This document shows positions 81-37,252 of a stretch of DNA of 64,000 nt, piece after piece (the first letter of the stretch is position 1; every line of letters starts with the position of its first letter). Origin of the DNA: Prasinococcaceae sp. CCMP 1430. Its lineage: Eukaryota; Plantae; Prasinodermophyta. Below the pieces are notes generated by a model. The model worked only from the letters and a program-made list of their open reading frames with translations. It ran no database searches and had not been told where the DNA came from. Both the position numbers and the translations under genes were made by a program. The stretch is from the NCBI GenBank assembly GCA_013416795.1, contig RQSC01000314.1, forward strand, positions 6,097 to 70,096, read 5' to 3'.

Positions 81-1397
81 GTGCTGACGCTGCCCCCGCG
101 CGCTCGCAAGGCGGCCGCGGCCTTTGACGCCGGGGGGGGCGGCCTAGACGACGGCGGCGCCGACCGACTGCTCAATGCGATGGCCTGCGGGGCGCCGCGC
201 GGGCAGCCCGTGCGCTGTCCGCACCGGTGCCGTCGCAGCGAGATGAGCGCGCACAGACGAACCTGCGACTTCCGCCCGTTGCGCTGCCCGGACTGCAATG
301 AGACCTTCGCAGCGCGTCGTGGGGAGCAGCACGCGCGCGAATGCCCTGCCGCGATGGTATCGTGCCACAACTGCGGCGAGCGCCTCAAGCGCGCGCAACT
401 GCGTGCGCATCTGCGGGACGAGTGCGCGAGCCGGTACGTAGCGTGCCCTTTCGCAGAGATGGGCTGTCACGCACGCATGCATGCGGCAGATGTCGCCAAA
501 CACATCGAGGAGAACGCGGGCAACCATGCAGAGATGGCCGCGCGCTTTGCGGCAGGCCTTGCTTCGCGAGTGCTCGCGCTGGAGGAGAAGCTCGAAGACA
601 CCAGGGGCGAGCTGGCGGCAGAGAGGGCCGCACGAGCATCCGACGCTGAGGCGGCGCGACGACAGGTCCAAGCGGAGCGCGCTCGGGCCACTGAGGACAG
701 CGCAGCGCTCACTGCTGAGGTGCGCCGACGCGCCTTCCCCCCCTTCCGGCCAACCTGCCCGAACGCAATTCATCCCACCCACACAGGCGAGCCCCTGTGC
801 TCGCTTCCGCGCCATGCCAGTGCTGTGGTGCCTGCACGCGGCTGACTCTGCGTGCGATGTCGACGTCATCGCCGCTGCCGCGCTGCCGCGCTGCCGCACG
901 TAGGTGGACTGGTTGGCCGAGCTGGCGCGCAGCGGTGCCGAGAATGCAGCCCGCGAAGCGCGACGTCGCCAGCGCGAAGCAGACGAGCACGCGCACAAAC
1001 TGTACGCTGAGGCCGTCAGCGCCCGGCGGGCTGCGCAGGACGCCGCCAAGAACCCACTTGCGGACTTGCGGGACGTCCAGGCGGCGCTCGGTGCGTGCAC
1101 AGCGCCGCGGCGATGTGGCGCTGGGTGCACGCGCCCTGAGCGCGCTCAGGCTAACGCGCGCGTGCACCACCACGCGCGCTGGCCGGTTGCCTCCCAGGCG
1201 ACCTCAGACTGCGCGTGGACGAGCACAAGGACGAGGCGCGAGCGAGCGTGGCCGCGCTGCTCGCCAAAGCGCTGCACGAGCAGCGCTCGGAAACCGAGCT
1301 CTTGCGAGGGCGCCTCAGAGCGCTCGAGGACCGAGTGTCGGAGGACGTCGCTTTGCTCATGTACGGGGCGGGCTCCAAGCCCTCACGCGCCTATTAG
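81..1397 (+). CDS. TRAF-type zinc-finger protein with coiled-coil C-terminus (probably 5'-partial); exons ~81-719, 904-1090, 1198-1397
   Basis: Repeated C-x2-C...H-x3-C fingers (CPDCNETF..EQHARECP, CHNCGERL..LRAHLRDEC, CPFAEMGC..DVAKH). GT-AG introns 720-903 (phase 0) and 1091-1197 (phase 1) join three ORF pieces in frame. Confidence 0.7.
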
Positions 1398-1597
1398 GTG
1401 TGCGGCCGCGCCGGCGCCGCGATGGTGCGGATGATGTCCGGTACTGGACCGTGAGAATGCGGGGTAAATTCTGTGCAACGCTGCGCGTTCGCGCCGGCTG
1501 CGGCGATTCTGCACCTCGCGGCCGCGGCGCGTGCACGGCTCGCCGCAGGCGTCCCCGTGTCCGCCGCGAGCGCCGGCTCCGCGACCCCGCCCGAGCC

Positions 1598-2664
1598 CTA
1601 CGTACCCTTGGAGCCCTTCTTCCCCTTGGAGCCCTTCTTCCCCTTGGAGCTCTTCGTACCCTTTGCGCCCTTGGAGCCCTTTGTAACCTTGGCACTCTTC
1701 GTACTCTTCGTACCCGCTGCCGCATCGACGGCCGCCTGCATGAGCCACCTGTCGCTCTCAGCCTGGCGCTCGAAGGTCTCCATGAGGACCGCGGCCTCGG
1801 CTGCACCCCAATCGCGCTTCACCCAGTCCCCGCCGTCCTCTTTCGTCGAGTCTGCCATCTCAGCCTTGATGAAGACCTCTTGCTCCCTGCCGGCAAGCAG
1901 GCGCGCGCGCGCCTGCTCCCACGGCAGCACGTACGGGTTGGCCTGGGGGCGGCCCTCGCGCACGAGCGCCAGAGCGTCGTCGAGCTCCATGCCGCGCGCG
2001 TACGTCAGGTAGCCCAGCACGCAGAGATTGGCCCGATTGATACCCGCCGTGCAGTGCACATACACCGGCTTGTCGGACGCCCGCACGAGCGCGTTGAGCG
2101 CCCGCACCATGACGGGGAGCATGGCGGCCTGGTCCAGGCGGTCGAAGTCACGGACCCCCACGCGGTGCATGAGGATGCCCTCCTCCGCGCCCGCCGGGCG
2201 CACCTCGTCCTCCCAGTCGATGTCCAGCGCCTCGAGGCAAAGGTCGCTCTGCAGGCTCAGCACGGCGCCAACGCCCGCCTCGCGCGCCAGACGCGACACG
2301 TCGGCGGCCGAGCGCGGGCAGCTGCCAACGAGCACGGCCGCGTCCGCCGCGTCTGCCGCCACGACAGGGTCCCAGTTCAGCGTCCACTGCCATCGGCCGG
2401 GGGGTGGCGGATCGCCGCCGCGCGGTGGGCGCACGCCCCCCGTCAGGCCGGCCGCCGCGCTCTCCTCCTCGCGTTTCTTGAACCCCGCGGCCTCGTCCGT
2501 CTGGGCCTCCGCGACCTCGGTCTCGTCCGCATCGTCCGCCGCGTCCGCCGCGTCGGTCTCGCCCTTGGTCGCGCGCGGCGCGCGAGGGACCGCCCGCCGG
2601 CGCAGGCGCGCGCGGCAGCGCGCGCCGCGCGCGGCGGCGAGAGCGCCGCCCGCGCCAGCGCCAT
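1598..2664 (-). CDS. Dual-specificity glucan phosphatase-like protein (SEX4/LSF2 family), no CBM seen
   Basis: HCTAGINR P-loop, VRDFD acid loop, LSLQSD motif. A transit-peptide-like ATG at 2664 is out of frame with the body. Confidence 0.8.
1600..1715 (-). repeat. Degenerate 9/18-bp coding tandem repeat encoding a (SKG/KKG)n tail
   Basis: cccttggagcccttctt units on the + strand translate to KGSKGAKGTKSSKGKKGSKGKKGSKGT. Confidence 0.85.
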
Positions 2665-2979
2665 CAGAGCTCGACCCACCCAACCTCTCTGCCCGCTCAA
2701 CCGCTCCTCCCTCCCCCTACCACAGGCACTCGCGCCTTGCGTGCGCAGTGTGGCGCGGGCCGGGGGCGCAACTTGCGCGTGTGCGCTGCGCGCGGCGGCT
2801 GGGATATTTTTCGCCTGTGGACCCTATCATATAAACCCTAACTGTACAACCCAAATTACAGAATGCCGGGCACAGTCCGTGCGCGGTACTAAGAAGCTTC
2901 TTCCTGTGCACCTACAGCTACGCGCGGTGCGTCGGTGCGAGCGAACGTGCGCGTTGCTTACTGCGGCACCCGACAACGC

Positions 2980-5900
2980 TCACGGTCGGGAGGTGTCGCT
3001 GTGCATCGAGTCGTACTTGCGCAGGGCGCGCGACTTGACGCCCGATAGGAGCTTGCTCATGTCCTTGTGTGAGCCGCTGCCAACCCCGGCGCCGAACAAT
3101 TCGAGCGGATCCCTGCTGATCTCCACCTCGGACCCGGCCGCCTCGCCGAAGCTGTTGCCGCCGGCGCTCCCCTTGCTTAGGGTGCTCGAGTACGTGGGCA
3201 CGACGTGGCGCACCTTGGCGGCCACCCAGCCCTTGGGCCGCCCGAAGTCAGCGGCGGGGGCTTCCGCGAGCTGCACCTGCACGAGCATCTTATCGCCGGT
3301 GACGCCCTTCAGCACGCACGCGCCGATGTTGCGAAGGCGCAGCGCGGGCAGTGCGACGCTGCCGTCGCTCGCAGCAATCGCCGCGCAAGTGCACTCGCCT
3401 GTGGCGTCCCACTTGAGCGTAACGGGCAGCACTGACTCGTCGGTGAACGTCATCTCGGCGACTGCCTGCCCCGGTTGGGCTTGCCCCATGGTGCGCGCCG
3501 CCAAGTTGGCAGTGGCGCCAAAGTAGTCCGCGCGGCCGGTGGCTAGGGGTTTCCGGAAGACGTCAGCGCCGTGCGCCATGCCAATCTGCACGCTGACGAG
3601 CGCGCCCATGCCATTGGGGTCGTCGCGCGTGGCGAGGAGATGCTCCGAAAGGCTCGCGCCGAACGCCAGGGCGGCGTGCATGCTCTGAAAGGCGACGGTA
3701 AACTTGCCCATTTCGGGCATCTTGCACTCATAGCCGCCGAAATGAGCCAGCGCTTCGCGACAAACCGCCTCCCAGTGATGCATGGCCGCCAGGCCCTCGG
3801 TGGAGCCCGCGGCGGCGCTCTTGGTGTTCTGCGTGCTGTGCGAGATGGATGCCCCGGCGAGCTGCGCCCTGCAAAAGACGATAGTGACGCCCGTTTCAGG
3901 AACCGGCGACTGGTAATAGCTGGGGGACACCATCGTCGTCAGCCGCGGCGGGGGAAACTTGCGACCGGCCGCTGCGGCAGGTGACACCTCAATGAGCGCC
4001 ACGGCCCTCGGGAGCTCGCTATCCTCGCGAGGATGATTGTTCATGACTAGCCTACCGCCCTCATCAATGTGCACGCTCAGGCTGGCACCGCGCACCCCCG
4101 GACCCGCCAGGCTGTGCACGACAGCTGGGGCCGAGGACTCGAGCAGATGGTCACCGAGGGAAACCACCATCGTACGCGGTGCAAGACCGTAGCGCTGGGC
4201 CTGTTTCCACGCAGCCTCGCTGACGACGGTCTGGCCGCCCCATGCGCAGCGCGCAAGCGCGATCGCAGCGCGCACGCCGCTGCCGCTAATTATGCGGCGC
4301 GTAGCCGCGCTCGACGCCTGCGCCGAGTCGGCAAATGAGGGCACTGTGAAGGAGTCACCGCCGCTCGTGCCCGAGCCGAAGGTGGCACCACCCAACACGC
4401 GGCCAGAGGCAGTGCGGGCGTAGCCTGCGGGCTGCGGGAGGCCGGTGCTGTCGCCGGCGGTGCTGTCGCCATCACGGCCACCGTTGCCAACAGAAATGCG
4501 CACTTCATGCGTCCCAACGTCACTCAGCCCTGCGCCTTCGTCGCTGACCTCGGTCAGGGACGAGGGGTAGCCTCGCCCTCCGTGCGAGCCCTTGCCTGGC
4601 TTGCGCTCGAGTATCTTGAGACTCATGTCGGGCGCGGCGTGCACTGCAAGTGCAAAGCGTGGCCCCGGCTGCGAGAGCGCGCTGCGCGCCTCCCCAAACG
4701 AAGTCACGCCCAGGAAGTAGGGCCACGCGGCGAATGTGAGCGCGAGCTGCAAGGCGCTGGCACACGCCACCGCCGCCGCAGGACAAGCAAAGCCCACGAG
4801 CACGACGCCACGCAGCGCAAGGCCGCCATCGTCGCTCACATATCCTCCGAACTGCTGCGCAACAGAACACAGAATTTCGTGCGCCAACACGGCGAGCCCC
4901 TCAGGCACGTGGTCGGGGGACTCGCCGAGGGGCGAGTCCGCGCACAACCGCAGCGCGCACACGGCGCGCACTGGGTACGAGCGCATCGCGCCGTCGCCGT
5001 TCATCGCGTCACTGGTATCGTCGGTGCCCTCCTTGTCGCGCGCGTCCGCGTCGAGCGTGGCCGCGCTGCGATAGTTGGCGTGTAGCACCAGCAAGTTCAG
5101 CGTGGGCGGCTCGGTCGACACGCGCCGCACGTTGGGGAAGCGCGGGGCGAAGGTGCGCCACGGAATGGGGCTTCCCCAGTACGGATGTGCCGTGTACAAG
5201 CATGTCGCGCCGGGCGTAGTGTCCACCTTACTTGAAGTGTCCGGGGGCTTGTCCGCGCCAGTCTGTAGAACGCGGCCCTCAAAGGCCCCAACGCACTCAA
5301 TGGTGGGGTTGCCTGCGACATGCATGGCGCCTGCGAGCGCTTTTGCGGTAGCGTGCGTGAGCAACACCTGGCCGCCGTGAGCCATATCGCCTACGGCGCG
5401 CGCGAGCTCGAAGCCAGGACCCTTGAACACCAGATGACGGCTCATGTCATGGAGCTTGGCCTCGTACTCGTCGGCCTCGGCGAGGTGTACGCCCATGCGC
5501 ACGCGAGGACCAGAGAACATGAGCGCTCCGTCTGGCGAGCGAACTTGCTCGCACGAGGGCAGTTGCAGCACCCTGTCTGGCCAGCGAGCCAGCAGGAGCT
5601 TCTCCTGCACATCGACGCAAAAGCGGACTGCAACTGCCGCTGAAGGGAACGCAATCTCAAAGCTGTCTCCCTGCGTGGCCATTTCTGTGCCGCCCAGCTC
5701 GTCGAGGGCTGCGCGCACGATGCGATCGTGCGTGTCCTGCACCATGCGGTACGCGGCAGCGTCCTCAACACTCATCGCTGTCGAGCCCTCCAGGTCCGTC
5801 ACCACGAAAGCCACCGGGTCACCCTGGCGTGGCACGTAGCGTGCCGACGTCAGTGCGCTGTATCCGTCGTCTGACACCTGCGACACCTGTAGCGCGTGCT

Positions 5901-7602
5901 GGCGCGGGCCGGCAGCGTGCGCGTCGGCTTCCTTCCGATCACCCAAAACAGGAAGCACGCCGGCCACGCCTCGCAGTACCTGTCGCATCGCGGCCGCCTG
6001 TGCGAGTTGGCGGTCGCGCCACGCCATCAAGCTCTCGTACTGTCGCCGCAGTCGCAAACGCTGGAGCAAAATGTACGCGATTGCCAGGATGAGCAGGACC
6101 CCGGCCACGACGGCCGTCACCCAGATGGTGATACCGTCGTCGCCCGAAGCTGGCGTCACCACGCGCACGCCCACCGTGCTCAGCTTGTAGCCCGTGCCCA
6201 TGGCAGCGTTGTGCGCGCTCACGTTCGCGTGCATCTCAACGCCATCCTCCAACGCAAGATTCTCGAAGAGTACCGAAGTCTCGTTCGCTGAGACGCTCAC
6301 CGTTTCGCCCACTTGCGCGCCGCCCACCTTCACAAGTTTAACCTCGTACGACTCAATCCACGACTCATCTTCGACGAAGGGCTGCCAGCACGCGCGCAGC
6401 GCACCGTCCGTGCCATGCGTGCTCGAGCCAGACGAGGGCGCCACCGTGGTGATCGCTGACAGCGGATTGAGAGGGTCGCACTCCTCACCCGCAGTCAGTA
6501 CGATGCCGCGCGCCGCCGGCGGCGTGGAATCCACAAGCACCGTCGCGCTGCTGACGTTGGATGAGAGTGGCGGGCCGCCTTTGTTGGTTCCCACCACCGT
6601 CACGTAGTACCGCTGTCCATTGCGCAACGCCAGGCCGCTCGCCTCGAATCGCTGCTCGAAGTCCTCGACCGGCTCACTCGCGTTTATTGCGACTGGCTCA
6701 AGCGCGCGGGCGTCGGCCATGCCCGGTGAGTTGCCCAGGCCCCATTCGTACGAGCGCATGCCGCTCTGCGCGTCCGTGAACGCGCTGAAGGTGAACTTGA
6801 ATGTGTCGAGGGAGCCCACAACCGCGGGTGCCGAGACGCCGCACGCAGGCGGATCGCACGTGGGCGGTGTGCCGTCGCAGTAGCCGCTCACTCGTCCGCT
6901 GTCTTCGTCCGAGTAGATCAGGTACGTGCCAACCACGTGCGCCTCGTTGAGCCACTTGCCCCACAGGCATCTGGGCACCTCCCCGCAAAGATAGGGATTG
7001 TTAGATGGCTGGATGACGTTGAGGATCGAGCTGGGCCGCTCGACCAGGTCGCACCACGCGTCGGGGATGGCGCCCTCGAGCGAGTTGACGTCAAAGTAGA
7101 GGTCCTTCATGCCGTCAATGGCGGCGATCTCGGGCGGCAGAGTGCCGGTGAGCAGGTTGTCGCGCAACAACAGGCGCTGCATTTTGCGAAGCCGTCCGAG
7201 CTCAGGCGGGATTCCCCCGCTGAACTTGTTGACGTGGAGGTAGTATTGGCGCGCCTCGGTCAAGTTGCCCAGGTAGGGCGTGAGCACGCCCGTGAGCCGC
7301 TTGTTGGAGGGCTTGCGCGGGCCGAAGTCAATTCTGTACACGTGGTTGAACCCATCGCCGTGGGCGTCTTCTGGTGCAGGGCAAGGGTACGGCTCGGGCG
7401 GCGGCGGGTAGAGCGCGAAGCAGTCGCAGTCGATGGCCTCCCACTGGCATGGGTCGACGGCGTCGTCCCATGTGGACAGCAGGCCCGCGTCATTCGTGAC
7501 CGCAGCCCTGAACTGGCGCAGCGCCTCGGCCTCATCCGGGTGCAGCGGGAGGCTGACGTCCCACGTGCCCTGGGACTCGGGGGCGCCCTCGTCCGCAGAC
7601 AT
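2980..7602 (-). CDS. LRR/FnIII single-pass receptor with three class III adenylyl/guanylyl cyclase homology domains
   Basis: LRRNT (LSTWDDAVDPCQW), plant-type LRRs (NKFSGGIPPELGRL, NLLTGTLPPEI), NPYLCG cap, FnIII-like repeats (FTDAQSGMRSYEWGLG, DSTPP, WQPFVEDESWIESYEV), TM ITIWVTAVVAGVLLILAIAYILL, cyclase motifs VVTDLEGST, GDSFEIAF, RVRMGVH, DYFGATANLAAR. Confidence 0.85.
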   Translation of the reverse strand: MSADEGAPESQGTWDVSLPLHPDEAEALRQFRAAVTNDAGLLSTWDDAVDPCQWEAIDCDCFALYPPPPEPYPCPAPEDAHGDGFNHVYRIDFGPRKPSNKRLTGVLTPYLGNLTEARQYYLHVNKFSGGIPPELGRLRKMQRLLLRDNLLTGTLPPEIAAIDGMKDLYFDVNSLEGAIPDAWCDLVERPSSILNVIQPSNNPYLCGEVPRCLWGKWLNEAHVVGTYLIYSDEDSGRVSGYCDGTPPTCDPPACGVSAPAVVGSLDTFKFTFSAFTDAQSGMRSYEWGLGNSPGMADARALEPVAINASEPVEDFEQRFEASGLALRNGQRYYVTVVGTNKGGPPLSSNVSSATVLVDSTPPAARGIVLTAGEECDPLNPLSAITTVAPSSGSSTHGTDGALRACWQPFVEDESWIESYEVKLVKVGGAQVGETVSVSANETSVLFENLALEDGVEMHANVSAHNAAMGTGYKLSTVGVRVVTPASGDDGITIWVTAVVAGVLLILAIAYILLQRLRLRRQYESLMAWRDRQLAQAAAMRQVLRGVAGVLPVLGDRKEADAHAAGPRQHALQVSQVSDDGYSALTSARYVPRQGDPVAFVVTDLEGSTAMSVEDAAAYRMVQDTHDRIVRAALDELGGTEMATQGDSFEIAFPSAAVAVRFCVDVQEKLLLARWPDRVLQLPSCEQVRSPDGALMFSGPRVRMGVHLAEADEYEAKLHDMSRHLVFKGPGFELARAVGDMAHGGQVLLTHATAKALAGAMHVAGNPTIECVGAFEGRVLQTGADKPPDTSSKVDTTPGATCLYTAHPYWGSPIPWRTFAPRFPNVRRVSTEPPTLNLLVLHANYRSAATLDADARDKEGTDDTSDAMNGDGAMRSYPVRAVCALRLCADSPLGESPDHVPEGLAVLAHEILCSVAQQFGGYVSDDGGLALRGVVLVGFACPAAAVACASALQLALTFAAWPYFLGVTSFGEARSALSQPGPRFALAVHAAPDMSLKILERKPGKGSHGGRGYPSSLTEVSDEGAGLSDVGTHEVRISVGNGGRDGDSTAGDSTGLPQPAGYARTASGRVLGGATFGSGTSGGDSFTVPSFADSAQASSAATRRIISGSGVRAAIALARCAWGGQTVVSEAAWKQAQRYGLAPRTMVVSLGDHLLESSAPAVVHSLAGPGVRGASLSVHIDEGGRLVMNNHPREDSELPRAVALIEVSPAAAAGRKFPPPRLTTMVSPSYYQSPVPETGVTIVFCRAQLAGASISHSTQNTKSAAAGSTEGLAAMHHWEAVCREALAHFGGYECKMPEMGKFTVAFQSMHAALAFGASLSEHLLATRDDPNGMGALVSVQIGMAHGADVFRKPLATGRADYFGATANLAARTMGQAQPGQAVAEMTFTDESVLPVTLKWDATGECTCAAIAASDGSVALPALRLRNIGACVLKGVTGDKMLVQVQLAEAPAADFGRPKGWVAAKVRHVVPTYSSTLSKGSAGGNSFGEAAGSEVEISRDPLELFGAGVGSGSHKDMSKLLSGVKSRALRKYDSMHSDTSRP

Positions 7603-7674
7603 GGTCGCGCGCGCACGCGCGCGCGGGCCCCCCGGCGCGCGCGAGCGCCGGGGCGCGCGCTGCGCACCCCGTGT

Positions 7675-7675
7675 G

Positions 7676-7705
<30 letters not shown>
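7675..7705. repeat. (CA)n microsatellite, probably within a 5' intron of the receptor cyclase
   Basis: Direct reading. Flanked on the minus strand by GTAAGG and TGCGCAG. Confidence 0.85.
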
Positions 7706-7708
<3 letters not shown>

Positions 7709-8063
7709 CGCCTTACGTTCACGCCCGCCCCGCGCCGATTTTGCGCGCGCGGTCGCTGCGGCGGCTGCGGCCTTTTACCCGCTGGCCGTCTGCAGATATG
7801 CTTGCCGACTGCTGAGAGCAGCGGCGGCGGCATCGCCCGCGGGCGCGTGCCGCGATATGATCCGCGCGGCGCCCGCGCGCAGCACTTGCAGCGCCCGCCA
7901 GCTCAGATGTCAGTCGTACCGTACTCGTACGCGCTCGCGCCCCACCCCCACCCCCCACGCGCGGGGCGGCGGCCCCACCAACCAAGGGCATCGCCCACCA
8001 GCCAGCCAGGGCTGCACAGGCCCGGCCCGCCGAGGGGCACGCACATCCCACCGGCCGGCCCCC

Positions 8064-8096
8064 GCGCGCGCGCGCGCGCGCGCGCGCGCGCGCGCG
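8064..8096. repeat. (CG)n microsatellite (Z-DNA-prone)
   Basis: About 16 CG units read directly. Confidence 0.85.
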
Positions 8097-8491
8097 GCCA
8101 CCACCACGCCGCGCCGTTCGGGGAACGGCCAGAGGTCAAAAAGCATTGCGTCGTCCGGGCGCGGCCTCGCATATGTAAAACCCTAACCTGTCACACGGGG
8201 TGTTTAGGTGTGCTGTACGATAGGGTTTACACATAGCTTCTTTTAGTGACCAAGCTTTTTTTGTGGGGCGCGGTTTTCTCGCATTTTCAGGGGAAGTTGG
8301 ATGCCGGTGGGAAGAGGTTGGGGGGGAGTGCCTGGGCCGGCGCCCTCGCGGCCCTCAGCCTGCCCCAACCCGCACCCTTCCACCGGCGGGCGCGGGTGTG
8401 CGGCAGCTACGACGCCCCGCTCAGCGCCCGATCGCCCCCACTCGCGCTCAAGGAGGGGCGCGCGGGCGCGCGCGCGCGCGCGGCGGCTTTC

Positions 8492-30255: not shown

Positions 30256-33200
30256 CTACAACGCCATCGCGCTCGCCTGTTTGTTGAGGTCGAAGCCATG
30301 CGCGATCTGCACGTGCACGTTGACACATGCCAGGCATGCGGCGGCGTGCGAGAGGAGCGCGCCTGCACCCGCGACCGCCTCTGCGGCACCCCGCGCGGCG
30401 GAGGGATCGCCTCCCTCCGCGGCCATAGCAATTGCCTCGGCGCGCGCACGATGCTCGGCCGCTCTTAGTGCGTCTCTTGTTCCCTCGCCCATCGAGTGAA
30501 GCATCGCGATCACCTTCTGCCCGTTGTGCACCAACGCCCAAAGCGCCGAAGCGGCGTGCGCGCGCGCCGCGGCGGTGTACGCCCCTCCGGTGCGGTCCCC
30601 AGCAACCTGGATGAGCACGCGCAAGGGGCCACCGCCACTGCTGACGAAGTGTGCCTTGGCCTCGGATACGAACGCGCAGTTTCGCAGGAGGGCAACGGCG
30701 GCAGCGGCAGCACGCCGCGATGCCGCGCCTTTACCGCCCTCAGCGGGCGCCCGCGCGGCCACACACGCCAGCTGCACGAGACCGCAGAGCTTGGGCCCGC
30801 GCAGCACTGCGCTCGCGCCGTCGGCGTGCGCAGCGATTGCCGCCAACGTGAGCAGTGCCTGTTCTGCGAGACGGACCGCCGAGGCTGTGCCGACGACGAC
30901 GCCTCCCTGCCTTTTCTTCCCCGAGGACTTCACAGACGCAGGCTTGCGCGTCGCCAGCGCCACGTCTGTCGACGACGGGTATGCTTCGCCAATGATGCGG
31001 CCGCACGCGGCCAGCACGACGCTCTTCGGAGACCCGAGCACAGCCCTCGTCTCCGATCCGGCTGCGGCGCAGTGGGCGGCTCGCAACGAGGCTTTGATGA
31101 GAGCTGCCGGCGACTTGACGTCTGCGGCCGGGCCCACAGCCAGGCCCAGCGCACCGTTGTTATTGCCGGCCGCTAGCGCCCGCCGCGCGCCGCTGCCGCC
31201 GCTCGCAGCCACGTTCGCAACGAGCGCGATGAGCTCGAGTCGGAGGGCACCCCCGTCAGAAGTGCCCGATGCACAAGCTGCGGCGGAGCGCGCCACAGGC
31301 CACAGGGAGACAACGACCCTGGCGGCCCCTGCCGCAGCGGCGGCATCGGCGCCCCGCCTCGAGCCGAGCGCGAGGTGGCGCAGCAGGGACGTTGCACGCG
31401 TCGCACCAGCGAGCAGCTGGGCCCTGCGGTTCGCGCCAGCACCTACGCCGCCGCTGAGCGTCCAGGCCTCCCGCGCGGCCAGTGCCTGCGCCGCCAGCGC
31501 CGTGTGCAGACCGGCATCAATTGTGGCTCCCTTGGCCGCACCCGAGTGCGCGATCAGGCTGCGCAGACAACTCAGCGCCGCCGCGCCCGTCGGCGACTCC
31601 TCGCCAGCACTGTTGACGATCGTGAGCAGGTCCATCGCCAGCTGTGCACCGTGCCTGTCCCCCTTCCCGAGGGCAGCTGCAGCCTCCGCCGGCGTCGCGA
31701 GCAGTGCTGCGGCGCCGCGGCAGACAGATGCGACAATTTCGGCGTTCGAAGTCACCGAGGGTGCCTTGAGGAGACGTGACACGCCAGCCAGGGCAGCCGA
31801 CGCAAGCTGGCGCCCATCGGGGCCCTGCCACCACGGGGCGCTCTTGTCCCCTGTGAGCATGGCCAAGGCAGAAGAGGCGCTGGCCGCCGCCGCCGCGCGC
31901 TCCGCCTCTGCAGCCGGATCCTGCGCCAGGCCGCCTGCGGCGGCGAGCGCAGCGAGCACGCCAGCAGCGACGAGCGCCCCGCCGCATGCACGCAGTACCT
32001 GTCGGTGGGACTCGCTGCGGGCGGCCGCGATGCACATGAGCTCGCAGACCGCCGAGATTGCGCCGCACGCGTCCGCTGCGTGCGGGCCAGGGAACGCCAC
32101 GTGCGCGAGGAGAGCTCCGGCATCCTCGTCGCCTTCTTCTGCGGCACTCGGCACACTCAAGGCCCGGAGGAGCACGGGCCACGTCTGATCCGCAGCAGGC
32201 AGTGGGCCACATGCAGCCTCGTCCAAGGTGTCAGTGGCGAGGACCGCGCGTGCGAGGGCCTCGCATGCGCCCCGGAGCACGCAGGGGGCCTGCGCACTGC
32301 GCTCGTTGGTGGCTGCCGCGGCGACCTCCCACAGCTGCAAACTGCGGGCGAGGCCAGCGGCGAGGTCGTGCGGCCGCCGCCCAGGCAGCTCCTCGGGGTC
32401 CTCGACGCCAGCGGCAGCTCTTTGCTCGAGCATCGCCGTGACGCACCGCAACGCCGCGCCCCTGACGGCGGCGCACTCGCGCACGTCGAGCGACGCCAGC
32501 AAGGCGCACTGACCCGCCTCGAGCCAGGATCGCTCGACGAGCGCCCTGGACGCGTCGCAGCTTGCAAGGGCTGCCAACAGCGCGTGCGAGGTGCAGCGCG
32601 CGGGCGCCCACGGATCGCGACACGCGCGACTCAGCCAGTACGTGCCACCCGAAGCTGCAATGGACTGCGCCCACACGTCCTTCGAGCACGTTGATGCTAT
32701 CGTCAGAAGGGCGTCGAGAGAGCTGTGCACGGCGCCTCGTCCGCGCAGGCCCACAGGTCTCTCGCGACGCTCCACAGCGACGCAGGTCACAAGGCTCGCA
32801 GAACTTTTGGCAACAACATCCATGGCGTCGATAGACCCGGCGGCAGCTGCCACCGGCGCGAGGGCACAAATGAAGCGAATGGCGAGCACTCGCAGGCCGT
32901 AGCGCGCAGCGTCTTGCTTCGTGCGCCACTCAGTCGAGTCACGCCATGGAATGATAGAGTCCACCAGCATCTCGAGCAGGGAACGAGATTCGGGGTTGTC
33001 CGAGGTGCACACCGTTGCAGCCAGCGCGCTTGCCTCGCGCGAGGTGCCCCTCGCAGCAACCACGCCAGAAAGAGCCGCCAGCACGCGCATGCACTGCTGC
33101 GTCACAACCACCAAAGAGCTCGGCACGCCGGTCGCGGCATCCAGGCTCGCGCTGTCCTGCTTCACCAGGGCATGGCAACATGCGTCCACTATCGGACAGA

Positions 33201-36200
33201 ACGCGGCCCGCACAGCCGACGTAAGCATTGCCACAAAGCCGGTCGGGATATCGCCAGGAGGGGCCGCAACAAGGAGCTGCTCGGCGAGCGCGAGGACCTC
33301 AATCAGCAGCGCGCGGTCCGCTGATGTCGCGGGCACGACCGAGAGAAAGCGTGCCAGCGCCTCGCCCGCACCCGCAGCCAGCCAGCCCGAGGCCCCTTCG
33401 CACGATGAGCAGGTGTCGCGCGCAATTGCGATCTGTGCCATCGCCTCCGAGTGGCCAGCGGCGCGCCCGAGGGCCTCCTTGAAGGCCCTCGGAGCAACGT
33501 CGACATGGAGCGCGCTGATGATGGACACGTCGAGCGAGGACATACTGCCCACGGCGCCGTCAACCGCGGTATCGCGCGCGCTCTGCAGCGATTCGAGCGC
33601 CTCGCGCGCGCTGCCCGAGAAGAGCACGAGCGACGCCACCAGCTCACGTGCGGCATCGAAGTCCGCAGATCCTGAAGTGGCGCCGGCGTCGCCTGTCACC
33701 TTCACTTCACATGGGAGTTTGTAGGCGTCAGCAAATGGTCCAGGGAGTGCGATCATATGAGCAGGCACGCCGTCCGGCACCAGCGAATCGGCGCCTGCGA
33801 GGCCGAGGGCACGCGGATCGAAGACGATGTAGGCGATCGCCGCCGCCGCCGCCCGACGCACAGCCATAGATGCGTGGAACACGAGGGGCACGAGCTGCAG
33901 GAGCCGGCCGTCGTGTGCCAACCACTGACGCGCGACGCTAGAGGCACCCACGGCCGACGCGAGCAGTCCCGCAGCCGAGGCCCGAGCTGCGCCGCCCCAG
34001 CTCTCGCCCGAGCTGCACTCTCGCAGCAAGGGTTCAAGCAGTGTGTCATCGGACAGAATGGGCTCGAGACGGGGGTCGTGCGAGAGAGCGATGAGCTGCT
34101 CCGCTGCGGCCGCCCTGACATTGCCTCCGATGTTGAGGTTGCCGGCGACGCGCGCCAAGTCAGGCGCGTTAGCGCAGCTCCCGCTCGCACGGGAGCGGTA
34201 CACCGTGCCAGGCATACCGTACGGGCGATCGGGTTCGTAGCCAGCAGCGAGCGCCGCGCCCAGCGGATCCGCAACGACGTCGCTCAGGTTGGCAGCCTCC
34301 GCGAGCGTCACAGCGCGCGCCGCAGCACCGCGCCACTCCACCTCAGCATCTGCGGCGGCGTCCTTGGCGCTCGCGCCCCCCTGGGCCACGTCGATGACGG
34401 TAGCGGCGGCTCGCGCACGGCACGCCGAATCCACGCTGAAAAGCGCGCGCAGGGCAGGCGCAAGCTGGGCAAGGTCGTTCCTGGCGGCGCTGGACCCGTA
34501 AAAGGGTGCATCCATGGCGGCTCCCTCGATGAGCGCGGAAAGCGAGCCCATCGCACTGCCGGCCGCGGAGGCCGCGGCAGATCCAGCGCGCGCCGCACAC
34601 GCGATCCACGGCGCACGGTCTACAATGCCGGCCCTACCCTCGGCAGTGCCCTGCGCAGCAGCGAGCAGGCACCGCGCGGCGTTCGCAGCGACATCCTCGA
34701 CCTCGCAGTGCAACGCACTGCACGCTAGCGCGTCTAGTAGCTGCGGGGAGGGCAGCATGAGGACCGCGGAAGCGATAGGCCTCTCCCCGCCCGTTGCTGC
34801 ACTCGCGGCCACCTCCGCCTCGACCTTGGCCGCGAGGACACCGAGAGCAGCCGCGCGCACCTCGTTTGATTTGTGAGACACGAGGCTCGCTGTCGCGCCG
34901 GCAGCCTCGAGAGCCGCACCCGAGCCCAGCGCGGCAGCCTGAATCAGCAGGGCCTGGGTCCTAAGTGCCGCCTCGGCCGGTTTCGGCGCTGCTCCGAGCG
35001 TCGGAACGGCCCGGGCGATGGCCTCGAGTGCGGCAGGCACGTCGACCTTCGCATCACTGCCGATGTCTGCCACCTCGCCCAGGTGTGCGGCGGCGTCCTC
35101 GAGGCTCTCAAGCGCCGCGGCAGCCTCAGATGCCAGGGCGAAAGCCGCCGCGGCAGCTGGGTCTGCAGCAGCAGCGTACGGCCTGAGTCTCGCAGCCAGC
35201 TTCGGCCGGCTCATCTGCATGGCGCCGGTGAAGGACGCGCGGGCGATGCGCCCCGCCAGCGGAGCCGGAACAGTGACGGCCGCAACCTCGGGCTCCAACA
35301 GCTCCAAGAACGCGGCAGCCACAGACAGGACGCGCGTCAGCGCCCTGGCGATGGCGTCAGTACCGCCAGCATCCACGTCTCTCTCGGCGACCTCGGCAGC
35401 GCTGGAGAGGGCCTCGAAGTACCCCTTGAAGCGCGCGCTGGCTTGCAGCACAAGCTTGCCTCGGGCATCACCCTTCGTGATGATGTCCTCATCTTTGACG
35501 CCAAGGAGCGGCACAGCAACTGCGAGTAGCGGGAGCAGCTCCTGGTTGCGAGTTGCCGTGTGAAGCGCGCCGAGCGCGTGATGCGCGACGATGTGCGCCG
35601 CTTCAGAGACGTCCACCCACTCGCCGTCGGACCCAACCATTCCCAGCGGAGGCGTAGGGTACGAGCGCGGGAAGTCAACCGTACCCGGTGTGTGCCGCGA
35701 CTCACCTGCCTCGGTGCTGGGTGCTGGCGCAGCAGGGAGCGACACGTCGAAAGATCCGTCCTGGGCCAGCGCGAGAGCGCGGGCTGCCGACCTCAGCACG
35801 GCGGCCAGCGCGGTGGCGGCCAGCGCTGGCAAGCCCGAGCCTGAGGTCGCATGCAGGCACGCCGACACGTTGCGCACCAGCGCTTTGCGGGCCAACACGG
35901 CCCCCGCCATGCAGTCCACAGAAGCGCGATCCTTGAGCTCCGTGAGCACACGAAGCGCCACGTCCGCATCTGCGGCGTGCTCAAGGCGCAAGTTGATTTC
36001 GAACAACGCCTGTGCGTCCTCGGGAGCCACGGGAGGTGCGCGCAGGCACAGACCCCAAGGAACGCCCCCGTCGCCTGTGCCGCTGACGCCAGCGCGCGCT
36101 TCGGCCGCTGCGGCGCGGCCGCGGGCGTACTCGGCTCGCTCGGCCTCGCCGAACAGACCTGCCGCCGCGAGCGCTGCGCCGTCGCCGGGGTGCGGCAGCG

Positions 36201-37252
36201 GGGACACATTGGCGGTGCCGGCCGCCTCCACCTGCGCGTCATCGCCCCCAGCCACCTCGCCATCGTCCGGCGCGACGCTGGGGGGCGTTGCCGAGTCGGG
36301 CGCGGCGCCGCCGCGCAGGTCGTCCGCCAGGGGCACTTCGCTCGCTGGCGGCGACCCGCACACGGGCGCGCGCATCATTGCCTCCTGCAGCGCGTCGAGC
36401 TCCATGGGGAGCGCAGGGACCTCGTCTCTGAGGTCTTCCCACACCGCCGCGAAGAACTCCACCGCGCCAAGCTCGGCCAGCCTGGCCTTGCACGCCTCGT
36501 CCGCTGCGAGCGACGTGAGCAGCTGTGCGACGTCGCAGTGGCGCGTGCAGTCGGCGAAGTTGTACCACTCCATGAGCGCCTCGAGGAAGCCCGTGCACGC
36601 GACGGCGTCGGCCGGAGTGGCGAGCCCGCTGTCGAGCTTGAACGCCGCGCTGTCCAGCGCGCGGCAGCGCACCTCCCGCAGGCGGTGCCCGAGCTTCTGC
36701 GCGAGCGCCGCCGGCAGCGCGCCCGTCTAGTCGAATACTTGCATATTTGCCTTCTTTAGCAACTACTTGCGCTGATGTTCCTGCAGCTCGTACTAATTTA
36801 GCTCCTTGTGTCGGCGCTAATTCAATATTATGAATTTCTGAACCTACTGGAATTGCTGTTAAAGGTAATGCGTTTCCTGTTTTTAAAGGTGCTATCGGAC
36901 TTGATTCAATTACTTGACCTAATTCTAACCCTTGTGGAGCTAAAATATAGTGTTGTTGTTCGCTGGTTTCAATTTTTGCAAGAAATGCGTTACGGTTTGG
37001 ATCATATTCTAATCCCATAACTTTTCCTGGATTATTTTGAGCGAAACGTTTCCATAAAACAAAACGGTAACGTCGTTTATGCCCACCACCGCGATGTCGA
37101 GCTGTAATTCGTCCTTGGTTATTGCGACCTTTTGAACGTTGGAAGCCCTTAATATTAGCACTTTTTTTAGTTTGTGCTGTATTTGGGAATCTAACTACCC
37201 CCCCCCCACACACCGCACGCACGCGCGCGCGCGCGCGTGCGCGCCCCGCCAT
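30256..37252 (-). CDS. RTTN: Rotatin (centriole/basal-body ARM-repeat protein); main exon 36726-30256, putative exon 1 37252-37223
   Basis: N-terminus KLGHRLREVRCRALDSAAFKLDSGL..LMEWYNF..LGAVEFF matches the rotatin N domain from recall. About 2150 aa of helical repeats; C-terminal LWALVHNGQKV. Confidence 0.85.
36727..37197 (-). pseudogene. rpl2: Organellar (probably plastid) rpl2 fragment inserted in nuclear DNA (NUPT), or a chimeric join
   Basis: Abrupt AT-rich block translating without stops to GRNNQGRITARHRGGGHKR..YDPNRNA..GNALPL..IHNIEL..LVRAAGTSAQVVAKEG, with A/T-ending codons. Confidence 0.92.

Follow-up and report, generated by a model that had tools for sequence, protein, structure and literature searches.

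Catalysis by class III nucleotidyl cyclases requires residues from two opposed cyclase homology domains (CHDs), and a Lys/Asp substrate pair is the one found in adenylyl cyclases. The receptor-type adenylyl cyclases of trypanosomatids (T. brucei GRESAG4.1/4.3 and ESAG4; structures 1fx2 and 1fx4) combine a periplasmic-binding-protein (PBP)-like ectodomain with one complete CHD that works as a homodimer. In the mammalian transmembrane adenylyl cyclases (tmACs) and in soluble adenylyl cyclase (sAC), the metal-binding Asp residues come from one CHD and the Lys/Asp and Asn/Arg residues from the other, which gives one active and one degenerate site per polypeptide. Animal receptor guanylyl cyclases (NPR-A, sea-urchin sperm guanylyl cyclase) possess an ANF-receptor-type ectodomain, a kinase-homology domain and one CHD per chain with GTP-type (Glu/Cys) residues, and fungal Cyr1/CDC35 is a peripheral cytosolic protein whose leucine-rich repeats (LRRs) are intracellular. 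The gene analysed here lies on the minus strand of a 64,000-nucleotide stretch of the genome of Prasinococcaceae sp. CCMP 1430 (assembly GCA_013416795.1, contig RQSC01000314.1, positions 6,097 to 70,096), called the window below, to which all nucleotide positions refer. Its product, the window protein, consists of LRRs and two fibronectin type III (fn3) domains, a single transmembrane (TM) helix and three CHDs (Table 1). The best explanation, and in our judgement a fairly probable one, is a receptor-type adenylyl cyclase with one composite active site to which CHD1 and CHD3 contribute.

The catalytic residues are distributed over the three CHDs in a complementary manner. Six positions were scored in each domain (metal Asp 1, substrate Lys, metal Asp 2, substrate Asp, transition-state Asn and transition-state Arg), using alignments to GRESAG4 and an extraction guided by three hidden Markov models (HMMs) with the reference residues checked; in this census the CHD of fungal Cyr1, which served as a control, reads DKDDNR and is complete. 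CHD1 of the window protein holds the metal-binding D603 and D646 only and lacks the Lys/Asp/Asn/Arg set, CHD2 holds none of the six residues, and CHD3 holds the Lys/Asp and Asn/Arg set only (K1294, D1359, N1366 and R1370), without a metal Asp. This C1-like/degenerate/C2-like pattern recurs in all 12 orthologues with the LRR-TM-3xCHD layout: the D-x-D signature of CHD1 and the degeneracy of CHD2 are found in every one of them, and the K..D.N.R signature of CHD3 in 11, the remaining one having Arg at the Asn position. The K1294/D1359 pair is invariant across the 12, and the Glu/Cys-type pair is absent. A wider alignment of 26 sequences (A1) shows no variation at D62, D775 and R786, the counterparts of D646, D1359 and R1370, and conservation of 90% or more at D19 and N782, the counterparts of D603 and N1366. 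Furthermore, K1432 in the LKG motif of CHD3 is Lys or Arg throughout. Given this split and the established class III mechanism, the sequences indicate that only the pair of CHD1 and CHD3 could make up a complete site. The former metal positions of CHD3 (R1245 and K1300) are occupied by Lys or Arg in nearly all orthologues, and such a conserved pair of basic residues could make the degenerate pocket a binding site for an anionic regulator. A Gln replaces the Lys at the substrate position of the last CHD in the LRR-cyclases P0007, P0009 and P0010 (Pedinophyceae, Volvox reticuliferus and Chlamydomonas sp. UWO 241), which keep the Asp, Asn and Arg; these proteins may have a different nucleotide preference.

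The three domains are not recognised with equal ease. The sequence of CHD1 finds GRESAG4.3 and 4.1, receptor-type adenylate cyclases of T. brucei (1fx4 and 1fx2, E 1.5e-11). CHD3 reaches E 0.065 against the PDB as a single sequence and finds 1fx4 at E 1.9e-19 when the 12-sequence family profile is used. A single-sequence PDB search with CHD2 returned only noise (lectin, 53BP1), and the domain was detected by profile-profile comparison. With profile probabilities of 99.4-99.7%, all three can be taken as genuine class III cyclase homology domains. An AlphaFold2 (AF2) model of residues 585-1450, computed from alignment A1, has a predicted local distance difference test score (pLDDT) of 73 and a predicted template modelling score (pTM) of 0.73, with 216 of 866 residues below pLDDT 50; it contains three ordered domains that share a common order of strands and helices, as well as a disordered insert of ~100 residues in CHD2. 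A Foldseek search with this model places 1fx4/1fx2 first (E 1e-12, TMt 0.78), followed by the mycobacterial Ma1120 and Rv1900c, and also retrieves CyaB. The two-CHD chains of the PDB (sAC, 4clk; AC9, 6r4p) align with it over ~630-690 columns at TMt 0.29 and a root-mean-square deviation (rmsd) of ~23 Å. Since they superpose so poorly, and over too few columns to span CHD1 to CHD3, the CHDs that are adjacent in sequence do not appear to be arranged as a C1-C2 pair in the model. With a quarter of its residues so poorly ordered (those below pLDDT 50), the pTM is near the maximum possible, which would imply one rigid multi-domain assembly. The three CHDs account for the cytosolic part; neither Pfam nor NCBIfam yielded a Pkinase match at E ≤1, and a Pfam scan of the window protein gave no match to a PP2C or RA domain. 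A preliminary description of this DNA had already named three cyclase domains and assigned metal-binding Asp residues to the first, degeneracy to the second and the Lys/Asp and Asn/Arg residues to the third. The profile comparisons and the model bear out the three domains, with the boundaries refined to those of Table 1, the residue split extends to 12 of 12 orthologues, and the motifs that were quoted all lie where they had been placed (VTDLEG at residue 601, 5802-5785, QGDSF at 644 and GPGFELARAV at 728 in CHD1; GGYECK at 1289, RADYFG at 1357 and ANLAAR at 1365 in CHD3).

The ectodomain was modelled with AF2 from an alignment of the 12 orthologues (A2; residues 1-490), which yielded a mean pLDDT of 81 and a pTM of 0.69. 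In Foldseek, the PDB structures that rank highest are ectodomains of SERK1, SERK2 and BAK1 from Arabidopsis and of SERK2 from rice (E 4e-12 to 1e-10), which superpose with TMt 0.78-0.91, an rmsd of ~2 Å and 25-29% identity; BIR2/3, SOBIR1, FLS2, PEPR1 and others rank lower. On the strength of these matches, the N-terminal 230 residues are modelled as a capped, plant-specific LRR module of roughly five repeats. The preliminary description had proposed an ectodomain like that of a receptor-like kinase (RLK), with an LRRNT and about four plant-type LRRs, FnIII-like repeats and one TM segment. The resemblance to RLKs is well founded, the best structural matches being plant SERK/BAK1 ectodomains, and the LRRNT_2 assignment and the plant type of the repeats stand, whereas the repeat number has to be raised to about five, with both caps present, as judged from the comparison with SERK1/BAK1. 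The fn3 assignment likewise holds for the family: 11 of 12 members match Pfam fn3 (best E 8e-8) and the family profile matches fn3 domains of titin and contactin, whereas the window protein alone stays below threshold (E 5e-4, 20.6 bits against a cut-off of 25). The motif of the first fn3-like domain recurs in the second, and direct Pfam support is weaker for the first than for the second. The single TM segment comprises residues 491-513 and is followed by QRLRLRRQ, so that by the positive-inside rule the topology is predicted to be N-out with a cytosolic C-terminus. The ectodomain contains 12 Cys, many of them invariant in the family and located at cap positions, and five N-x-S/T sequons, both of which are compatible with an extracellular domain.

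The closest parallels to this architecture each lack part of it. Like the trypanosomatid receptor adenylyl cyclases, the window protein combines a large, predicted extracellular part with one TM helix and class III CHDs on the cytosolic side, and these enzymes are the best matches, in sequence and structure, of CHD1 and of the CHD3 profile, including an extra segment between the third helix and the next strand, around a conserved Trp. Unlike them, it has an LRR and fn3 ectodomain and three CHDs, none of which is complete alone. Two CHDs of a single chain have lost complementary sets of catalytic residues, as in C1/C2 of the mammalian tmACs and in sAC; the window protein, however, has one TM helix, where the tmACs have a 2x6 TM anchor and sAC has no membrane anchor, it carries a third, degenerate CHD between the catalytic halves, and its CHDs belong to another subfamily. 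With land-plant SERK1/BAK1, BIR and SOBIR1 it has in common an LRRNT_2 cap, about five plant-specific LRRs, a C-terminal Cys cap and a single TM helix, but its output is not a kinase and its LRRs are separated from the membrane by two fn3 domains. Fungal Cyr1/CDC35 also combines LRRs with a class III CHD, and its CHD (P0008) matches CHD1 at 3e-20; by contrast, Cyr1 has PP2C and Ras-association domains (according to a precomputed Pfam list) and one complete CHD (DKDDNR), whereas the window protein has a TM helix and its orthologues have signal peptides. With the animal receptor guanylyl cyclases it would share the logic of a single-pass receptor whose cytosolic class III cyclase is under the control of a ligand-binding domain outside the cell. 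With three CHDs, no kinase and no PBP-like ectodomain, the window protein thus misses defining features of each of these families. For Chlamydomonas, more than 100 annotated cyclases with 13 types of partner domain have been listed, among them 'RNI-like' domains of the LRR superfamily (Meier et al. 2007, cited in PMC5632652), and the cyclases behind algal cyclic AMP (cAMP) signalling were said to remain elusive (PMC5632652). The passage concerned is a list of domain partners, in which no extracellular plant-type LRR, three CHDs, split residues or function are mentioned (PMC5632652). Full-text literature searches yielded no published description of the LRR-fn3-TM-3xCHD architecture, and cyclases go unmentioned in recent surveys of the RLKs of Chlorophyta. 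Wide prior characterisation of the architecture, which the preliminary description had named as grounds for refutation, is not the case: the catalogue note on 'RNI-like' partners is all that the literature yielded. Judged by sequence, the LRR-TM-3xCHD proteins appear to form a family of receptor-like cyclases that is conserved among green algae and as yet uncharacterised.

When the cytosolic part was used as the query in a full HMMER scan, 6123 proteins were retrieved at E ≤1e-3 and 109 at E ≤1e-30. Among the 150 best relatives, the commonest layouts are C1-degenerate-C2 (~26) and C1-C2 without a middle domain (~26). The preliminary description had called for a search of algal proteomes for the same architecture, and 12 members are now known from five green-algal classes, namely four classes of chlorophytes plus Prasinodermophyta. 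The same ectodomain is present in orthologues from Micractinium tetrahymenae (Trebouxiophyceae), Ostreobium quekettii (Ulvophyceae) and Tetraselmis astigmatica (Chlorodendrophyceae), and in two paralogues from Pyramimonas (Pyramimonadophyceae); several marine contigs also encode orthologues, and a Gonium pectorale protein contains the C1-degenerate-C2 core. In a maximum-likelihood tree, CHD1, CHD2 and CHD3 each form one group (support 88/86, 100/99 and 100/100) with the same internal branching in all three, which shows that the triplication and the division of labour among the CHDs are older than the split of the sampled green lineages. No streptophyte or land-plant homologue was present among the named matches, in searches that were limited by a word index and cannot prove absence. 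More distant relatives include fungal Cyr1 and myxobacterial cyclase-AAA/TPR (STAND-type) proteins with ~40% identity, and the same CHD subtype occurs in other settings in P0028-P0031, P0101 and P0226-P0249. Some proteins contain four to six tandem CHDs of this subtype (e.g. DBA04265.1 of the oomycete Lagenidium giganteum), and others are two-CHD C1-C2 proteins (e.g. CAJ1460724.1 of the dinoflagellate Effrenium voratum).

The open reading frame (ORF) on the minus strand is free of stops across 2980..7833, and the Met at 7602 opens a protein of 1540 residues, a length matched exactly by gene calls on several Tara metagenome scaffolds. Between the coding sequence of the window and the Tara variant L001, 19 codon differences are synonymous and 5 are non-synonymous. 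The upstream in-frame extension to 7833 is not conserved, since the GT microsatellite differs in length in L001 and shifts the frame. This ratio and the shifted upstream frame indicate that the LRR-cyclase gene is real and under purifying selection, and that Met 7602 is its conserved start. The 90% cluster of the encoded protein includes EukProt EP00793_Prasinoderma_coloniale_P004168 / PRCOL_00006344, and the window is assigned to the nuclear genome of Prasinoderma coloniale, a green alga of the Prasinodermophyta. The database model of PRCOL_00006344 has 1870 residues; it passes the TGA at 2980-2982 by means of a GTGAG donor that overlaps the stop codon, and then gains an Arg/Pro-rich exon from 2813 and a dual-specificity phosphatase ORF (DSPc, 1598-2683), all within 1598-2985 on the minus strand. 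Because no orthologue carries DSPc and the metagenome gene calls end at the TGA, this model probably represents two genes that were fused by annotation.

In the favoured model, a type-I-like single-pass protein would expose a SERK/BAK1-like LRR module and two fn3 domains on the outside and carry three CHDs of the trypanosome-like subtype on the inside. CHD1 would supply the metal-binding D603 and D646, while CHD3 would supply the adenine-recognising K1294/D1359, the transition-state residues N1366/R1370 and the phosphate-binding K1432, so that one composite site for the conversion of ATP to cAMP would form at the CHD1-CHD3 interface, as it does between C1 and C2 of the mammalian membrane cyclases and in soluble AC. 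When a ligand or partner binds outside, the signal would be relayed through the TM helix and a juxtamembrane helix, probably as a change in oligomeric state. CHD1 and CHD3 are proposed as the working pair on indirect grounds: their residues are complementary, C1-C2 relatives without CHD2 exist, the pTM points to a packed assembly, and the adjacent domains of the model are not C1-C2-like. CHD2 is most likely a conserved non-catalytic scaffold or regulatory module. The LRR module is structurally closest to the SERKs, which act as co-receptors in land plants, and what the ectodomain binds may therefore be a partner protein and not a free ligand.

Several points weigh against this model. The role of CHD2 is unexplained, and the SERK-like short LRR modules of land plants are mostly co-receptors, so that, by analogy, direct ligand binding would not be implied. 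In Pfam, the window protein scores 21.8 bits for Guanylate_cyc (PF00211) and thereby misses the gathering score of 21.9 by 0.1 bit, although its orthologues pass with 29-53 bits. This narrow miss keeps the cyclase nature hidden in standard annotation: the deposited protein is annotated with LRRNT_2 only, and the named orthologues are listed as 'hypothetical protein' or 'unnamed protein product'. Contigs of 5-10 kb with the 1540-residue protein were considered as transcripts, and the one examined turned out to be a Tara metagenome scaffold. The caveat of the preliminary description, that no signal peptide is seen at Met 7602, persists: the window protein begins MSADEGAPESQGTWDVSLPLHP, its LRRNT match starts at residue 21, and no signal peptide is visible after the Met. 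The upstream CS-domain gene ends 890 nt before Met 7602, and translation of this interval in its three frames, made in search of a signal-peptide exon, revealed no Met ahead of a hydrophobic stretch. In the window protein, therefore, either the TM helix would act as a reverse signal-anchor or the 5' end would be unusual, and export of a 490-residue, Cys-rich N-terminal domain by a reverse signal-anchor would itself be unusual.

These observations are also what could be cited for a protein that is not at the cell surface, with the LRR part in the cytosol, as are the LRRs of fungal Cyr1, or with the receptor in an internal membrane, especially as the orthologue models P0002 and P0039 likewise start without a signal peptide. 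However, 9 of the 12 family members (counting the window protein among the 12), including its closest relative P0027, show an obvious, cleavable signal peptide immediately ahead of the LRRNT motif, the 12 ectodomain Cys are in many cases invariant, the module folds like the secreted LRR ectodomains of plants, and the charges flanking the TM helix predict an N-out orientation, so that a location away from the surface is considered improbable. How the composite site is assembled is less one-sided, the data being compatible with pairing in cis and in trans alike. CHD1 of one receptor might meet CHD3 of a second, and ligand-induced dimerisation would then activate the enzyme. Dimerisation is needed by the trypanosome receptor cyclases, of which GRESAG4.1/4.3 are the closest solved relatives, and by the animal receptor guanylyl cyclases, single-pass receptors usually signal by oligomerisation, and in the window protein a long CHD2 with its disordered insert separates CHD1 from CHD3. 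Nevertheless, pairing between chains seems unlikely, as C1-C2 proteins of two domains joined by a short linker are common among the relatives, in keeping with pairing inside one chain as in sAC, and the pTM of the monomer model indicates a self-contained, packed assembly.

The composite site could also be dead, the CHDs acting as a scaffold or nucleotide sensor without cyclase activity. The metal Asp pair is lost in two of the three CHDs, CHD2 has lost every scored residue, and the Pfam scores are marginal. On the other hand, the exact complementary set is kept in 12 of 12 orthologues at very deep divergence, in surroundings that are only 25-45% identical, as would be expected of a working composite site and not of a dead one, and a pseudo-enzyme is considered very improbable. 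Equally hard to favour is a cyclase for GTP or another nucleoside triphosphate, or one of mixed specificity. The Gln in place of Lys in the chlorophycean and pedinophyte LRR-cyclases would speak for it, as would the exceptions to the Lys/Asp specificity rules among microbial class III cyclases, but the Lys/Asp pair of the 12 orthologues is invariant and identical to that of the aligned trypanosome adenylyl cyclases, with no Glu/Cys-type pair, and such a substrate is thus thought highly improbable. That separate LRR and cyclase genes were placed in frame by chance is scarcely credible: the high G+C content does yield many long spurious ORFs in the window, yet the 1540 codons are stop-free, the layout is colinear in 12 orthologues of different classes, the codon differences from L001 are mainly synonymous (19 against 5), and the three CHD trees share their species grouping with the ectodomain similarities. 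The receptor-type adenylyl cyclase with CHD1 and CHD3 paired within one chain remains the explanation that we prefer.

Table 1. Features of the LRR-cyclase gene and its protein (window positions; aa, amino acid residues).
Feature	Position	Strand	Evidence or remarks
Complete coding sequence	2980..7602	minus	1540 codons + stop, TGA at 2980-2982; intron not required
5' intergenic and leader region	7603..8491	minus	reaches stop of upstream CS-domain gene; (GT)n and (GC)n runs; no signal-peptide-coding ORF
LRRNT_2 N-terminal cap, aa 21-60	7423..7542	minus	Pfam PF08263 33.5 bits (cut-off 20.7), E 5e-8; C52/C59/C61 conserved, invariant columns in A2
Capped plant-type LRR module, aa 21-232	6907..7542	minus	~5 repeats LxxLxLxxNxLxGxIP + C-terminal Cys cap (C184, C206, C212); pLDDT mostly ≥90
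First fn3-like beta-sandwich, aa ~262-360	6523..6819	minus	all-beta in AF2 model; motifs FxDxxSGxxxYxW, NGxxYYVxVxAxNxAG
Second fn3 domain, membrane-proximal, aa ~395-480	6163..6420	minus	Pfam fn3 and family-profile matches
Single TM helix, aa 491-513	6064..6132	minus	Kyte-Doolittle peak 2.85; aligns with TM helix of all orthologues
Juxtamembrane linker, aa 514-593	5824..6063	minus	basic, then variable; low conservation in orthologue alignment; first model residues low-confidence
CHD1, C1-like, aa 594-812	5167..5823	minus	1fx4/1fx2 at E 1.5e-11; pLDDT >90
CHD1 signature DADVEA	D603 (5794-5796), A642, D646 (5665-5667), V725, E732, A736	minus	HMM-guided census
CHD2, degenerate, aa 875-1221	3940..4980	minus	hhalign vs CHD1 99.7%, E 1.3e-26; CHD-like strand/helix order in model
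CHD2 disordered low-complexity insert, aa ~1003-1099	4306-4596	minus	pLDDT <50
CHD2 signature RDGIRA	R885, D924, G932, I1104, R1111, A1115	minus	HMM-guided census
CHD3, C2-like, aa 1237-1449	3256..3894	minus	Pfam Guanylate_cyc 21.8 bits; family profile vs 1fx4 E 1.9e-19; hhalign vs CHD1 99.4%
CHD3 signature RKKDNR	R1245 (3868-3870), K1294 (3721-3723), K1300 (3703-3705), D1359 (3526-3528), N1366 (3505-3507), R1370 (3493-3495)	minus	
C-terminal tail, aa 1450-1540	2983..3255	minus	Ser/Gly-rich, poorly conserved

The G+C content of the window is 64-76%. Its other large ORFs encode a myosin head, rotatin, VHS/GAT, a DEAD-box helicase and an alpha-amylase, and a bacterial origin, considered in view of the G+C content, was ruled out by the myosin, rotatin, VHS/GAT and DEAD-box genes, by the microsatellites and by the EukProt entry PRCOL_00006344. 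Upstream of the LRR-cyclase gene, in the region 7603-8491, a (GT)n run lies at ~7680-7715 and (GC)n runs lie at ~8060-8100 and 8465-8490. Long antisense ORFs are located opposite real genes, for example an ORF of 909 residues at 797-3526 on the plus strand, which faces the cyclase and phosphatase genes; such ORFs are an expected by-product of ~70% G+C and not evidence of genes. The rotatin N-terminal domain is found in a 2138-residue ORF at 30256-36672 on the minus strand. Rotatin is a centriole and basal-body protein, and Prasinoderma coloniale has been described as coccoid and non-flagellate.

To our knowledge, land plants, with their hundreds of LRR receptor kinases, have no accepted canonical class III receptor cyclase. 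In the family described here, a SERK-like ectodomain is fused to a cyclase output, an arrangement conserved from Prasinoderma to Pyramimonas, Tetraselmis, Ostreobium and Micractinium, which makes the family a candidate for signalling from receptor to cAMP at the base of the green lineage. As a natural three-domain variant of the C1/C2 design, it would also be useful for studying the evolution and regulation of pseudo-heterodimeric cyclases. A more far-reaching reading, which is possible but doubtful when all its parts are taken together, would be that SERK-like ectodomains were wired to a cAMP output before the split of Prasinodermophyta and Chlorophyta, that the family is a candidate for the surface-activated adenylyl cyclases of algae, that CHD2 serves as a regulatory pseudo-CHD, and that R1245 and K1300 form an allosteric anion pocket. 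If this were true, early green cells would have used 'receptor-like cyclases' where land plants use receptor-like kinases, and the family would provide a candidate enzyme for, e.g., the adhesion-triggered cAMP burst of gametes.

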